A stretch of 64,000 nt of DNA from Macrostomum lignano (taxonomy: Eukaryota), in NCBI GenBank assembly GCA_002269645.1, contig NIVC01000975.1, positions 62,001 to 126,000 of the forward strand. Direction: 5' to 3'. The position numbers and the translations under genes are program-made. A model generated the notes under the pieces. That model had not been told where the DNA came from. It was given only the letters and a program-made list of their open reading frames with translations, and searched no databases. Positions 42,401-45,400 of this stretch are shown piece after piece (within the stretch, counting starts at the first letter, position 1; every line of letters begins with the position of its first letter).

Positions 42401-45400
42401 GGGGTAGGGTATATTGGTAGTTTATCCATGGGGTAGGGTATATTGGTAGTTTATCCATGGGGTAGGGTATATTGGTAGTTTATCCATGGGGTAGGGTATA
42501 TTGGTAGTTTATCCATGGGGTAGGGTAGATTGGTAGTTTATCCATGGGGTAGGGTAGATTGTTAGTTTTTCCTGGGAATAGGGTAGATTGGTAGTGTATC
42601 CATAGACGAGGTAAATTGTAGTTTATTGAAGGCGTAAAGTATATTAGGGCTAATCCTGAGAGTGACTAGCACAGATTATTTTGCCTGTTCACCTAGTTAA
42701 GTACCTATTTATGTCTAATTAAACAAAGCATGACGAAAGCCAAAGAATCGGCGGGCTTCCCTCTGGTTTATTTTTAGAACTGAGTGAGTATGTACACGTT
42801 AGGCTTTCTGCGTTTATTGTACGAAAATGCTGTTCAGAATATATAGAATACAAAGTGACGAGATTTTGCGCAAGAACACGTGCGAATTGCTAGCACAGTA
42901 CAAAAATAGCAGATTATGCACCATTAAGTCGCTTTGTTTATAGCATCAGCAGAAAGCCGAAATTAAAATAGCCGAGCTCCTGTTGCTAAGCCAGTCTCGA
43001 TGACAAAGTCCTCACAGCCTCCGTTAGCGCTAAACTGAATCTGGATGCTGGTCTCGTACACTGAGCCGCCTTGTCTGCATGTTATTGCGCCATCGTCGGA
43101 CATTTCACAAATCCTTGCTTGCACCAATTGGGCCAACTGTCTGACACTGACAGATTCAGAGCGGCGGCTGACGTCTAGCAGAGCCCTGGGCAGCCAGCCG
43201 CCTTTGACCTCATTCCTATAGGCTGCGTAGTCCGCCATGCTAGCAAAGATGGCGGCGGATCTGGGAATTAGCGCCGGTAAACTGCAGCAAAGGGTTTTCG
43301 GATTCTCGAAGCCCAGACTGAAAACCAACGGCAATGTATAGAACTGGTCAGATTGACGATGAATCGGGTGAAAGCGCGATCCACGACACGCTTGATAGAG
43401 CAGCAGGACGAAGCCGCCAAGACTTTCTAGATCCTTCATCAATTCTTCTACCGAGACTTCATTAGCGTCAGAGTCGCGAATACCAGCTCTGTTGCCGTGG
43501 GCTGAGACGGCCAAGAATACGCAGCGAGGCAATACTGACTTACTCTTATAGTCCTGGGCGATGTTTCTTAGAAAATCCTTAATTTCATCCGCTGTCACGT
43601 AGTCATTAGCTGGGCACAGAGTGTGCACATTGTCAGTCGAGCAGCCGAGTTGTTGCGCAATTTCCAAAAAGTACTCCTTGTCTTTTTCAAAGCCGACTCG
43701 ATTGGCTTTTGAATTGGCATATTTGCCAATAACGATTGAAACGAATACGTTCGGTTCGGCGCACTCGCTGGATGGTTTGGTGTGCAGCGACTGGAGCACA
43801 TTAAATGCGTCTTGCTGCGCAGCCTCCGGCACAGGAGGTTGATCAACAAGTTCACAAGCGACTGGTGACTGTGATTCCGCTTTGGGCACAGGAGGTTGAT
43901 CAATAAGTTCACAAGCGACTGGTGACTGTGATTCCGCTTTGGGCAATCCTGTCATCTTCCGAGACCGGAGACTGCAACAATGCTTAGAGATTTGGTTAGC
44001 CAAATCTTCAACAGTGTCCAGACTGTGAAATGCTCGCAGCACTTCTTGCCAGTTGGCGCCACCCTTGCCGACGACAAAACTGTGAAACTCGCTATTTTCC
44101 AGCGTTGACTTTTTATCGCTTAGGTCAGTCTTGTTGAAGCTGACCTCGTCTTCGCACTCTGTCGGGCACTGCAGGTAGAACACGTAAAGTTTAGTTGATT
44201 TTGCGTCTCTCCGGCGATACAGCGGTCTGTAGAGGTCGGACTCGGTCACAATCTTACCACCGAGTACCGGCTGCTGACAGTTGACTGTTGTTTCGATCTC
44301 GTGGACAATTGCCACTTCGCTTGAGTTCGGAGTCTCCGCGTCAAGTAAGAATTTTGCGACTTTTTGTTCGTAGCTGTCCATCGAATCAGCATGCTGGTGG
44401 TCAAATTTGAATTGGTTAGTTAGCTGCTCACCAATCTTTGTACATTTGGGATCAGAGTCTCGAGTGCTAAGCAGTAACACAGGTGTACCTTGATTGATCA
44501 GCTCAGTAAACTCGCTTTCTGGCAATTCGGCGAAAGTCTTTACTCGGCCTCTGCAAGGCTTACGGATCTCATCCTCACTTGCGACCTGCATCTCGATTCG
44601 TTACTAACTGTATGCTTTATTGGAAACAGAAACGTTATGGGTTTAGGATTTGCTTTTCACAAAAGCTCGAGTGTATATATACACATGAATCTATTTTTAT
44701 CGCCTATGACAGAGGCAGAGTTTGCACCACTGTTAATCACATTAGTGGTTTTTCTTAACGCTTCTTGTAGATTGAAGTGCGATTGCGGTAGATTTACTAG
44801 GCTTAATTACATGCAATATGCCTACGTACGTCAAAGATACGTAAATCAAAGCGCATCATCGCCGTTTTTGATGTAGAATTAGCGCAATGGAAATGGAATA
44901 TGGAAGCAAACAAAAATACTACAAGGTACCAAGTCAGACAGACAGCGAAATGGTACCAGGTCAGCCAGAAAGTTTTTGCGCTTTCGTACGACCTATAATT
45001 ACGAGCGTATTAGTCATAGCAAGAAAGCACGACTAATACGGACAAGAATCCTTTCTTTGACGAGAATCCAAGAAAGCAGGACAAGAATCCTTTCTTTCTT
45101 CAAACACATGAAGTCTCGACGACTTTTTGTTGATTAAAAATTTGGTTAGGGATAAAAATGGACAACAATTGCTAGGGGAAAAATTTATTGACTGTAGGGT
45201 AGACGTAGCAACATCTCCCAATCCTGCAGCAGCAGCTGTGTAATTGCCAAGTCTACATTTGTCAAGCAAAAAGGCTACAAATGTTTCTATCAGATACAGA
45301 AATTTCAAAAGATGAAGCAAAACACAGCCAAAGGAATGAGCGGATGACTTGATGCACAACAACGTTCACCGTTGATTACCTCTCTCTCTCTCGCTTTATT

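Follow-up and report, generated by a model that had tools for sequence, protein, structure and literature searches.

A caspase-family gene nested antisense in an IP3-receptor intron of Macrostomum lignano, with a predicted degenerate caspase-like domain ahead of its catalytic domain

The window considered here is a 64,000-nucleotide stretch of the Macrostomum lignano genome (assembly GCA_002269645.1, contig NIVC01000975.1), in which a single-exon gene for a caspase-family protein of 542 residues, P0001, lies wholly inside one intron of an IP3-receptor (ITPR) gene, on the opposite strand and without overlap with the exons of its host. The features of this part of the window, with the evidence that places them, are as follows.

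41600–42046, plus strand: upstream ITPR exon, similar to human ITPR2 residues 1951–2085, with an approximate 5′ boundary (ORF, alignment and splice donor)
42047–45412, plus strand: ITPR host intron, phase 0, GTGAGT/cgcag (flanking-exon alignments and splice sites)
42116–42603, no strand assigned: 29-bp minisatellite, 16.7 copies, lying 3′ of the caspase gene in this intron (repeat search)
42813–42818, minus strand: AATAAA, candidate polyadenylation signal, 145 nt 3′ of the stop codon (sequence reading)
42963–44591, minus strand: complete coding sequence of the 542-residue caspase-family protein P0001 (ORF and identical public gene call)
44674–44682, minus strand: TATA-like tatatata, candidate promoter of the gene's own, about 85 nt 5′ of the ATG (sequence reading)
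45413–45730, plus strand: downstream ITPR exon, similar to ITPR1 residues 2143–2235 and ITPR2 residues 2100–2193, with an approximate 3′ boundary (alignment and splice acceptor)

The coding sequence extends from an ATG to a stop codon over 1,629 nt, stop included, the ATG is preceded by an in-frame TAA at a distance of four codons, and the coding sequence coincides exactly with a public gene call on the source contig; the gene, described as hidden in the sequence-only reading, had already been called there as a single-exon gene. The intact, intronless ORF reported in that reading is borne out, since stop-free sequence in the 3,366-bp intron extends over up to 545 codons, and 300 shuffles of the intron reach a maximum of 188 (mean 114), so that the ORF is three times as long as the longest one in shuffled sequence. 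GC content is 0.40 in the rest of the intron and 0.50 in the nested ORF. It represents a genuine coding gene of M. lignano; the AATAAA ascribed to it is indeed present (42818–42813 as read on the minus strand), and its promoter and polyadenylation signal are probably its own, which would allow independent transcription.

The antisense position within ITPR is supported concordantly by the flanking exons, the splice sites and the public gene calls. The plus-strand ORF at 41600–42079 aligns to human ITPR2 residues 1951–2085 and that at 45440–45748 to residues 2100–2193; a GTGAGT donor follows position 42046, a cgcag acceptor precedes position 45413, and the flanking exons join in frame. In the public calls, a 2,914-residue ITPR is encoded on one strand and the 542-residue C14 gene within it on the other, and a second small antisense gene is called in a different intron of the same ITPR gene. 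Arrays like the 29-bp minisatellite fill the neighbouring ITPR introns. When a flanking ITPR exon was used to look for homeologous ITPR loci of M. lignano, the only matches were short ITPR fragments of other organisms. In animals, long introns often harbour short duplicate genes on the opposite strand (PMC3814207, PMC5174743), most of them young copies that landed there by chance (PMC5174743). The present case resembles these intronic genes in that a short gene is contained in a single intron of a long host, on the opposite strand and with candidate signals of its own (PMC3814207, PMC5174743), and it shows no notable difference from them; the nesting thus looks ordinary, and on the simplest view the location would reflect no more than where a duplicate happened to insert, in a long intron filled with repeats.

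Along the protein, two domains can be delimited, separated by a linker that contains a recent duplication.

43002–43754, minus strand: catalytic caspase (Peptidase_C14) domain, residues ~280–530, with R298, Q400, R459 and G464-G465-W466 kept (Pfam, PDB profile search and predicted fold)
43266–43379, minus strand: predicted disordered inter-subunit loop, residues ~405–442, linking beta4 to beta5 and containing one Asp, D415 (AF2 pLDDT <50 at residues 405–436)
43828–43945, minus strand: in-frame 57-bp tandem duplication, 2.1 copies, 98% identical, encoding twice a 13-residue stretch followed by (I/V)DQPPV (repeat search)
43956–44492, minus strand: conserved N-terminal domain, residues ~34–212, with a predicted caspase-like fold lacking the catalytic His (AF2, Foldseek and hhalign)

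The identification of the protein as a C14A-type caspase is upheld by a Pfam Peptidase_C14 match at residues 287–494 (E=2.8e-13, 50.6 bits against a cut-off of 21.4), and every motif quoted for it is found, namely NRVG at residue 297, SAHG at 363, QACRG at 400, AYRN at 457 and GGW at 464; the codons of His365 and Cys402 occupy 43497–43499 and 43386–43388 of the minus strand. The S1 pocket by which caspases accept Asp is formed by Arg179, Gln283, Arg341 and Ser347 (caspase-1 numbering). Three of these four residues have counterparts in register (R298, Q400 and R459), and the Ser347 equivalent is Gly465 of the GGW motif; of the catalytic apparatus read from the sequence, the dyad and three of the four pocket residues are therefore intact, the fourth being changed in the GGW that had been noted in place of GSW. 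In the family alignment neither SAH365G nor QAC402RG varies, and their His and Cys correspond to His121 and Cys163 of caspase-3. As the first profile used against the PDB included two non-Macrostomum caspases, the search was rerun with M. lignano sequences only; this profile matches caspase-3 (E=6e-10), Spodoptera caspase-1, CED-3 and caspase-7, all 60 among the matches listed are caspases or an engineered caspase, and Arg64, His121, Cys163 and Arg207 of caspase-3 align to R298, H365, C402 and R459. Profiles are needed for such matches, a single-sequence phmmer search of P0001 against the PDB giving no chain at E<=1.

The AF2 model of the C-terminal domain (pLDDT 80–93) agrees with the profiles, the best 50 Foldseek matches all being caspases or CED-3, with E-values of about 1e-10 and target-normalised TM scores of 0.6–0.7. 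The C-terminal half is thus predicted to adopt a caspase fold in p20–loop–p10 order, nearer to caspases than to meta- or paracaspases. Animal caspases such as caspase-3, caspase-7 and CED-3 (MEROPS C14A) are the best matches of P0001 by both sequence profile and structure, and they share with it the predicted fold, the His-Gly and QACRG motifs, the order of the subunits, the equivalents of Arg179, Gln283 and Arg341, and the Trp of GSW. The protein differs from them in its strong divergence, in the change of Ser347 to Gly, in an N-terminal extension of ~280 residues that carries no CARD, DED or PYD, and in a catalytic domain encoded without introns. The Asp of the inter-subunit loop, D415, is not conserved, and the closest paralogs do not have it. 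Cleavage after Asp is predicted because the domain combines a complete His-Cys dyad with a basic S1 pocket, and the earlier judgement that the protein is probably active seems reasonable as a prediction.

The lineage specificity first suggested for this caspase agrees with an exhaustive HMMER scan of 1.84 billion representatives, which yields nine matches: seven M. lignano proteins, the query included, and two ENA proteins, P0010 with a CARD and a full C14 domain and P0008 with a full C14 domain. These two are the only non-Macrostomum proteins at E<=1e-3; E-values for the nearest non-family caspases lie between 1e-4 and 1e-5, the scan recovered no named protein of another species, and the long two-domain form occurs among these representatives in M. 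lignano only. A word-indexed protein search returned the query and one paralog only, with either the single sequence or the family alignment. The family is very divergent and essentially restricted to M. lignano, and the gene in the window is a dispersed member of it. Its long relatives are P0002 and P0011 (43% identity to P0001) and P0013 (about 26%), which are BOX15_Mlig001330g1, BOX15_Mlig034312g1 and BOX15_Mlig006806g1, respectively. All of them share with P0001 the two-domain plan, the N-domain motif PVLGG.IV.E.DLY and a C14 domain in a single exon, as is the case in every family member examined; they differ in lying in tandem pairs with short C14 genes and not in ITPR, and P0002 and P0011 also in having GSW and no Asp in the inter-subunit loop where P0001 has GGW and D415. 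The tandem long/short pairs adjoin a homeobox gene or a CPSF_A-domain (RSE1-type beta-propeller) gene, and in other members key positions have changed (HACRG; a shifted Arg in AYSRP and SRWQ).

Divergence within the family bears on the selective regime. Between the window gene and P0002, dN is 0.47 and dS is saturated (>2), with the ORF and all motifs intact nonetheless, and with the nearest relative so distant the window gene's own dN/dS is not measurable. P0002 and P0011, which are 89% identical, give a dN/dS of 0.88 (NG86) or 1.13 (YN00) at a dS of about 0.06, which suggests relaxed or diversifying evolution in that sister lineage. A dN/dS near 1 had been named from the outset as telling against the original interpretation; such values do occur in the sister pair, but its ORFs stay intact, and the saturated dS leaves the window gene outside the comparison.

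The N-terminal region was overlooked in the sequence-only reading, which recognised no CARD- or DED-like prodomain in it and was right on that point: no CARD, DED or PYD is matched in Pfam at E<=1, nor any other prodomain family, and the model of the region matches caspase folds and not death folds. A Pfam Androglobin_V match on residues 129–210 (E=0.026) fell below the cut-off and was disregarded. The region is nevertheless a conserved domain, predicted to be folded and caspase-like, which is maintained in three paralog lineages with the motif given above. Its AF2 model is of moderate confidence (pTM 0.65, mean pLDDT 63.5 from a four-sequence alignment, rmsd 6–9 A to caspases); in Foldseek against the PDB, the best 50 matches are all caspases or procaspases, including all 40 at E<=1e-3, with E-values from 6e-5 to 1e-3 and query-normalised TM scores of 0.5–0.57. 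The secondary-structure elements of the two domains follow one another in the same order in the model. At the position of the catalytic His the domain has Thr101 or Thr102, the two alignments differing by one residue; at that of the Cys it has Cys142, and Trp181 stands at the position of the GSW Trp.

Comparison of the two halves by hhalign gives a similarity in the same register. The N profile against the family C profile scores 29.7 in local mode, compared with 13.3 ± 2.5 (maximum 21) in 100 column shuffles, and block shuffles reach 26.5 at most; one block-shuffle replicate equalled the global score, and the hhalign probability is 8–18%. An 11-residue segment of the N-domain is aligned with one of equal length in the C-domain, and FYLQC with LYQAC; in this register an invariant Thr occupies the His position, nothing corresponds to the S1 arginines, and C142 is retained. 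Against two non-Macrostomum caspase domains alone, hhalign of the N-domain gives no signal, and the sequence evidence for an internal duplication therefore derives from the family's own catalytic domain only. Fold and register together make it most likely, at the moderate confidence of the model, that the N-terminal domain originated as a copy of the caspase domain and has degenerated, and it is predicted to be catalytically dead. The 57-bp duplication belongs to the disordered stretch that links the N- and C-domains.

The whole is probably best explained, in our judgement, as a genuine, dispersed member of an M. lignano caspase family, an ordinary antisense nested gene whose product joins a degenerate caspase-like N-domain, a disordered linker and a catalytic C-domain. 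Its first part would be the N-domain of ~180 residues, a degenerate caspase copy with Thr at the His position, no counterpart of the S1 arginines and the Cys kept; its second, a disordered linker of ~70 residues with a recent in-frame duplication of 19 residues; and its third, the caspase domain, whose His-Cys dyad and basic S1 pocket would serve cleavage after Asp. Since there is no CARD, DED or PYD, activation would not proceed by death-fold recruitment, and the dead domain may instead partner the live one, either intramolecularly or across chains.

Such pairing has parallels in known systems. In cFLIP(L), a dead caspase-like domain activates caspase-8 by pairing with its live one (PMC7586951, PMC11121540), which offers an analogy for activation without Asp cleavage, with the difference that cFLIP and caspase-8 are separate chains joined by DEDs, whereas P0001 is one chain and has no death-fold domain. 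For the caspase-like prodomain of caspase-16, activation of the pairing type has been proposed (PMC12198278), and in the literature consulted mammalian caspase-16 is the only precedent described for a dead caspase domain followed by a live one (PMC12198278; PMC12292325 section 4). Both proteins have an N-terminal caspase-like domain without the catalytic His ahead of a catalytic caspase domain (Eckhart et al. 2025, PMC12198278); in both, the N-terminal domain probably originated as a copy of the caspase domain in the same protein, and intramolecular pairing is suggested. They differ in that the dead domain of P0001 keeps a Cys at the catalytic-Cys position and has a loop at the site of the inter-subunit linker, which the caspase-16 prodomain lacks, that a long disordered linker separates the two domains, and that the N-domain of P0001 is a moderate-confidence prediction. 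There is also no orthology to CASP16, the family being M. lignano-specific, and the event would therefore be independent. It may then be, with somewhat less than an even prospect, that M. lignano independently invented a 'self-partnered' caspase, in which a fast-evolving family unites dead and live caspase domains in one chain and built-in pseudo-dimerisation replaces recruitment by CARD or DED, as a second, convergent case of the caspase-16 architecture.

An unlikely alternative is that the gene is a decaying duplicate or encodes a pseudoenzyme, its ORF intact and its product no longer cleaving substrates or no longer expressed. The dN/dS of about 0.9–1.1 between the sister paralogs, the change of Ser347 to Gly, the inter-subunit loop without a conserved Asp and the drift of other family members at key positions are in keeping with this possibility; nevertheless, R298, H365-G366, QAC402RG and R459 stand exactly in register with caspase-3 after a dS >2, a divergence that a 1.6-kb ORF would not outlast without selection, the sister paralogs are ~100 substitutions apart without a stop (the expectation of stops being an estimate) and with their sole indel in frame, and the recent 57-bp duplication is likewise in frame.

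An origin as a retrocopy, in which the mRNA of a family member was reverse-transcribed into the ITPR intron, is similarly improbable. It would explain the single exon and the distance from the tandem clusters, the window gene being a dispersed singleton among relatives arranged in long/short pairs, and the distant P0013 does have introns, at residues 48 and 192, which are missing here. The absence of introns is uninformative, however, because P0002 and P0011, the nearest paralogs, already have a single exon for all of the region of homology (residues 74–591). Direct reading of the sequence shows no poly(A) or A-rich tract after the AATAAA, and a search around the ORF in the intron for LTRs, TIRs, flanking direct repeats and target-site duplications found only minisatellites and short repeats at chance level, so that the initial view of a retroposed or element-borne gene finds no trace there; with dS >2, such hallmarks of retroposition would have decayed.

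A functional coupling, in which the nested site ties expression of the caspase to the ER calcium-release channel through shared regulation or transcriptional interference, is pure conjecture and very unlikely: the topology alone speaks for it, together with the interference or co-regulation that host/nested pairs can show in other animals (PMC12274878, PMC11694760), but paralogs of the family have no ITPR association, nested antisense genes are frequent and mostly chance insertions of young duplicates (PMC5174743), and another small antisense gene call occupies a different intron of this same host. Least credible of all is that a mobile element or endogenous virus carried the gene into the intron, a reading for which the UniRef name of the paralog fragment P0006, 'Triplex capsid protein 2', and an rve integrase ORF at 61694–62737 of the window might be adduced, but P0006 matches Peptidase_C14 only in Pfam, which marks its viral name as an artefact, the intron contains no LTRs, TIRs, transposase or polymerase ORFs, the integrase ORF is 17 kb off and outside the ITPR gene, and outside the family the proteins nearest to it are ordinary animal caspases.

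A caspase nested in ITPR, as first stated, is of little weight, because the gene is already publicly annotated and antisense nesting is common. What is new here is the N-terminal domain (residues ~34–212), predicted from a moderate-confidence model to be caspase-like and catalytically dead, with weak in-register similarity to the family's catalytic domain. The family itself is of more interest, being so divergent that 1.84 billion representatives yield essentially one flatworm; a survey of lophotrochozoan caspases reports a kinase-like prodomain as the only unusual one in platyhelminths and does not describe this family (PMC11463336). Its long members seem to carry a degenerate second caspase domain in place of a death-fold prodomain; if this is true, caspase-domain duplication with inactivation of the N-terminal copy would have arisen at least twice, in caspase-16 and in M. 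lignano. Mammalian caspase-16 is functionally uncharacterised and is a pseudogene in humans and mice. In M. lignano, RNAi and transgenesis are routine, and this tractable, regenerating flatworm would then be a practical system for the function of cis-linked pseudo-caspases.

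The caspase gene of the window is carried by a 542-codon ORF on the minus strand (42963-44591) that starts with an ATG, has an in-frame TAA four codons upstream, and lies in a 3,366-bp intron interval whose longest stop-free run reaches 545 codons, against a mean of 114 and a maximum of 188 in 300 mononucleotide shuffles of that interval; GC content is 0.50 in the ORF versus 0.40 in the remainder. The frame is intact and all the motifs quoted in the sequence-only reading are located in it (NRVG at aa 297, SAHG at 363, QACRG at 400, AYRN at 457 and GGW at 464). The description of the gene as hidden is not justified, since contig NIVC01000975.1 of GCA_002269645.1 already has it as a called single-exon gene of 1,629 nt with a Peptidase_C14 match; taken as such, the nested caspase is ordinary, annotated already as a hypothetical protein. 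The public call around and opposite it encodes 2,914 aa and shows the IP3-receptor (ITPR) domains Ins145_P3_rec, MIR, RYDR_ITPR, RIH_assoc and Ion_trans.

Signals of the caspase gene and features of its ITPR host
41600-42079, plus strand: ITPR ORF, matching human ITPR2 residues 1951-2085 (E=1e-62)
42047-45412, plus strand: ITPR host intron, phase 0, holding the whole caspase ORF in antisense
42818-42813, minus strand: AATAAA, 145 nt past the caspase stop codon, without an A-run after it
~85 nt upstream of the caspase ATG, minus strand: TATA-like tatatata, read from the sequence
45440-45748, plus strand: ITPR ORF, matching ITPR1 2143-2235 and ITPR2 2100-2193 (E=4e-37)

Because these ITPR matches flank the gene, and the donor GTGAGT after 42046 and the acceptor cgcag before 45413 join the exons in frame, the caspase ORF lies wholly within one ITPR intron, and the antisense nesting proposed earlier is real. 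Antisense nested genes are common, their usual origin being short young duplicates landing in long introns (PMC3814207, PMC5174743). The location is most likely incidental, since the paralogs are unlinked to ITPR and another small antisense call occupies one of the other ITPR introns (34513-34821, minus strand, L002 19771-20079; 103 aa, no Pfam match). The suggested coupling of the two genes is unsupported. A listed minus-strand ORF in the same ITPR region, at 34402-34833, is likewise without a Pfam family.

The Pfam Peptidase_C14 match anticipated for the protein covers aa 287-494 (E=2.8e-13, 50.6 bits versus a cut-off of 21.4), and the Pfam search detects no prodomain family, CARD and DED included, in agreement with the first impression. 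Single-sequence phmmer of the window protein against the PDB gave no match; a profile built from M. lignano family members alone retrieved caspase-3 (best E=6e-10), Spodoptera caspase-1, CED-3 and caspase-7, all 60 of the 60 listed matches being caspases or engineered caspases. In this alignment caspase-3 Arg64, His121, Cys163, Arg207 and the GSW Trp correspond to R298, H365, C402, R459 and W466, so that the His/Cys dyad stands in register; H365, G366, C402, R403 and G404 are invariant in all family members and in the non-Macrostomum caspases P0008 and P0010. The AlphaFold2 model predicts a confident C-domain core (pLDDT 80-93) with a disordered loop (aa 405-436) at the position of the caspase inter-subunit linker, and its best 50 Foldseek matches in the PDB are all caspases or CED-3 (E ~1e-10, target-normalised TM 0.6-0.7). 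From alignment and model, the C-domain is concluded to be of caspase type (C14A); its dyad is intact and it keeps three of the four classical S1-pocket residues. Of the Asp-pocket residues listed earlier, the one that does not stand is the Ser347 equivalent, which is Gly465. The inter-subunit loop of the window protein holds one Asp (D415, in HRQSD followed by Q) and that of the closest paralogs none, so that activation by Asp-directed loop cleavage is not a conserved family feature.

The N-domain (aa ~34-212) is conserved across the three lineages of long paralogs, with 22 invariant positions among four sequences and the motif PVL(G/S)G.IV.E.(D/E)L. When it is modelled separately (AF2, mean pLDDT 63.5, pTM 0.65), the best 50 PDB matches, including all 40 at E<=1e-3, are caspases or procaspases (best E 6e-5, query-normalised TM 0.5-0.57, rmsd 6-9 A). 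The two models combined predict the same order of elements as in the C-domain (b1-a1-b2-a2-b3-hairpin-a3-b4-disordered loop-b5-a4-a5-b6), the b6 strand (aa 207-211) being visible in the full-length model alone, not in the separate one. The N-domain profile was compared with that of the family's own C-domain by hhalign.

hhalign scores, N-domain against C-domain, with controls
Observed: local 29.7, global 19.3
100 column shuffles: local 13.3 +/- 2.5, max 21.0; global 2.9 +/- 2.1, max 9.0
Reversed template: local 17.3, global 6.1
Block shuffles (12- and 25-column): local max 26.5, global max 20.3

The HHalign probability is only 8-18%, from a shallow alignment, and no signal is obtained when the N-domain is set against just the two non-Macrostomum caspase domains. 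The register makes structural sense: a segment of the N-domain is paired with one of the C-domain, FYLQC142 with LYQAC402, W181 falls on the GSW Trp, and TVEDLANQI on SVRQLAQLV. In it an invariant Thr occupies the catalytic His position and the S1 arginines are without counterpart. Fold prediction and profile comparison together point, with reasonable though not high confidence, to a degenerate caspase domain derived from internal duplication.

Scanned exhaustively with HMMER, 1.84 billion representative proteins yield nine matches at E<=1e-3, seven of them M. lignano proteins (query included) and two ENA proteins, P0010 and P0008, at E ~1e-5 to 1e-4, which bears out the view of a lineage-specific caspase. 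Both ENA proteins have a full C14 domain, and P0010 has a CARD in addition. The nearest relatives, P0002 (615 aa) and P0011 (609 aa), are 43% identical to the window protein. Their two contigs are syntenic, each gene being located downstream of a homeobox gene, and P0002 is followed by a short C14 gene; the third long member, P0013 (550 aa, ~26% identical), is in tandem with the short P0009. Long (two-domain) and short (C14-only) genes form neighbouring pairs at L001 10001-17328, L003 10001-12521 and L004 2069-11910, two of these M. lignano loci being syntenic copies beside the homeobox gene. At the ITPR intron the window gene is the sole family member found, and the protein collection searched holds no copy of it at >=90% identity. 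The paralog fragment P0006 (UniRef A0A1I8GWC2) is named 'Triplex capsid protein 2', a herpesvirus capsid term; Pfam gives Peptidase_C14 alone, which makes the name look like an error of annotation.

Between the window gene and P0002, dN is 0.47 and dS saturated, which makes the NG86 ratio of ~0.2 unreliable; the survival of a 1.6-kb ORF and all catalytic motifs through this divergence argues for long-term constraint. P0002 and P0011 differ by roughly 100 substitutions (an estimate) and one in-frame indel, with no stops, and their dN/dS of 0.88 (NG86) to 1.13 (YN00), at dS ~0.06 and uniform over both halves, agrees with amino-acid evolution that is relaxed or diversifying while the reading frame is preserved. 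A ratio near 1, earlier taken to speak against the caspase, is thus reached by this sister pair and has no direct bearing on the window gene. A 57-bp in-frame tandem duplication in the disordered inter-domain linker (43828-43945, minus strand; 98% identical, one Ile/Val mismatch) is very recent, the paralogs having one copy of the unit or none.

The proposal that the gene is retroposed or element-borne finds no evidence. Arrival by retroposition seems unlikely: neither a poly(A) remnant nor a flanking direct repeat is present around the ORF, although at dS >2 to the nearest paralog such hallmarks would have decayed, and the missing introns are shared with the nearest paralogs. In P0002 and P0011 the homologous region (aa 74-591) is one exon behind two tiny predicted 5' exons, and P0013, interrupted by introns at aa 48 and 192, still has its C14 domain in one exon; the lack of introns thus characterises the family and is uninformative for the window copy. 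Transport by an element is highly improbable, with no LTR or TIR around the ORF and a capsid label on P0006 that lacks Pfam support.

Elsewhere in the window, minisatellites (units 12-45 bp, 10-150 copies) occur in nearly every intron and intergenic stretch and account for the blocks of extreme GC/AT skew at 10-16 kb and 28-32 kb. In the host intron, the array's 29-bp unit resembles the reverse complement of a 60-bp unit located two introns upstream (39795-40050).

Other features of the window
41066-41532, 42116-42603, 45760-46189: minisatellite arrays, with ~30 more (e.g. 15359-17461, 27706-28971, 29446-30391)
50019-50993, plus strand: ORF with a weak RRM_1 match, between ITPR and the CPSF100/CPSF2-like gene
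53954-54946, plus strand: first exon of the CPSF100/CPSF2-like gene (Lactamase_B_6, E=4e-59), followed in the public call by Beta-Casp, RMMBL and CPSF100_C
61694-62737, plus strand: ORF of 347 aa that matches the rve integrase core (E=6e-10); it lies downstream of the CPSF100-like gene and is probably left over from a retroelement or DNA transposon

The published precedent for a caspase-like prodomain is mammalian caspase-16, and the N-domain of the window protein is predicted to be alike. The caspase-16 prodomain, with a predicted caspase-like fold, derives from duplicated caspase-domain exons and has lost the dyad; its authors describe it as having no parallel in known caspases and suggest that it pairs within the molecule (PMC12198278; PMC12292325 section 4). 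The pseudo-caspase cFLIP(L) joins caspase-8 in a heterodimer that is catalytically productive (PMC7586951, PMC11121540). The window gene is a single-exon nested gene that would be transcribed independently, its product a two-domain caspase, in part by prediction, whose C-domain, judging from its residues, would cleave after Asp; since there is neither a death-fold prodomain nor a conserved Asp in the loop, activation may occur by pairing of the dead N-domain with the live C-domain, in cis or in trans. A recent survey of lophotrochozoan caspases singles out, in M. lignano, just one with a kinase-like prodomain, and reports no further unexpected platyhelminth prodomains (PMC11463336), so that the divergent family is undescribed in the literature consulted. 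What is new here is this divergent, species-restricted family and, conditional on the N-domain prediction, its probable pseudo-caspase-plus-caspase architecture.
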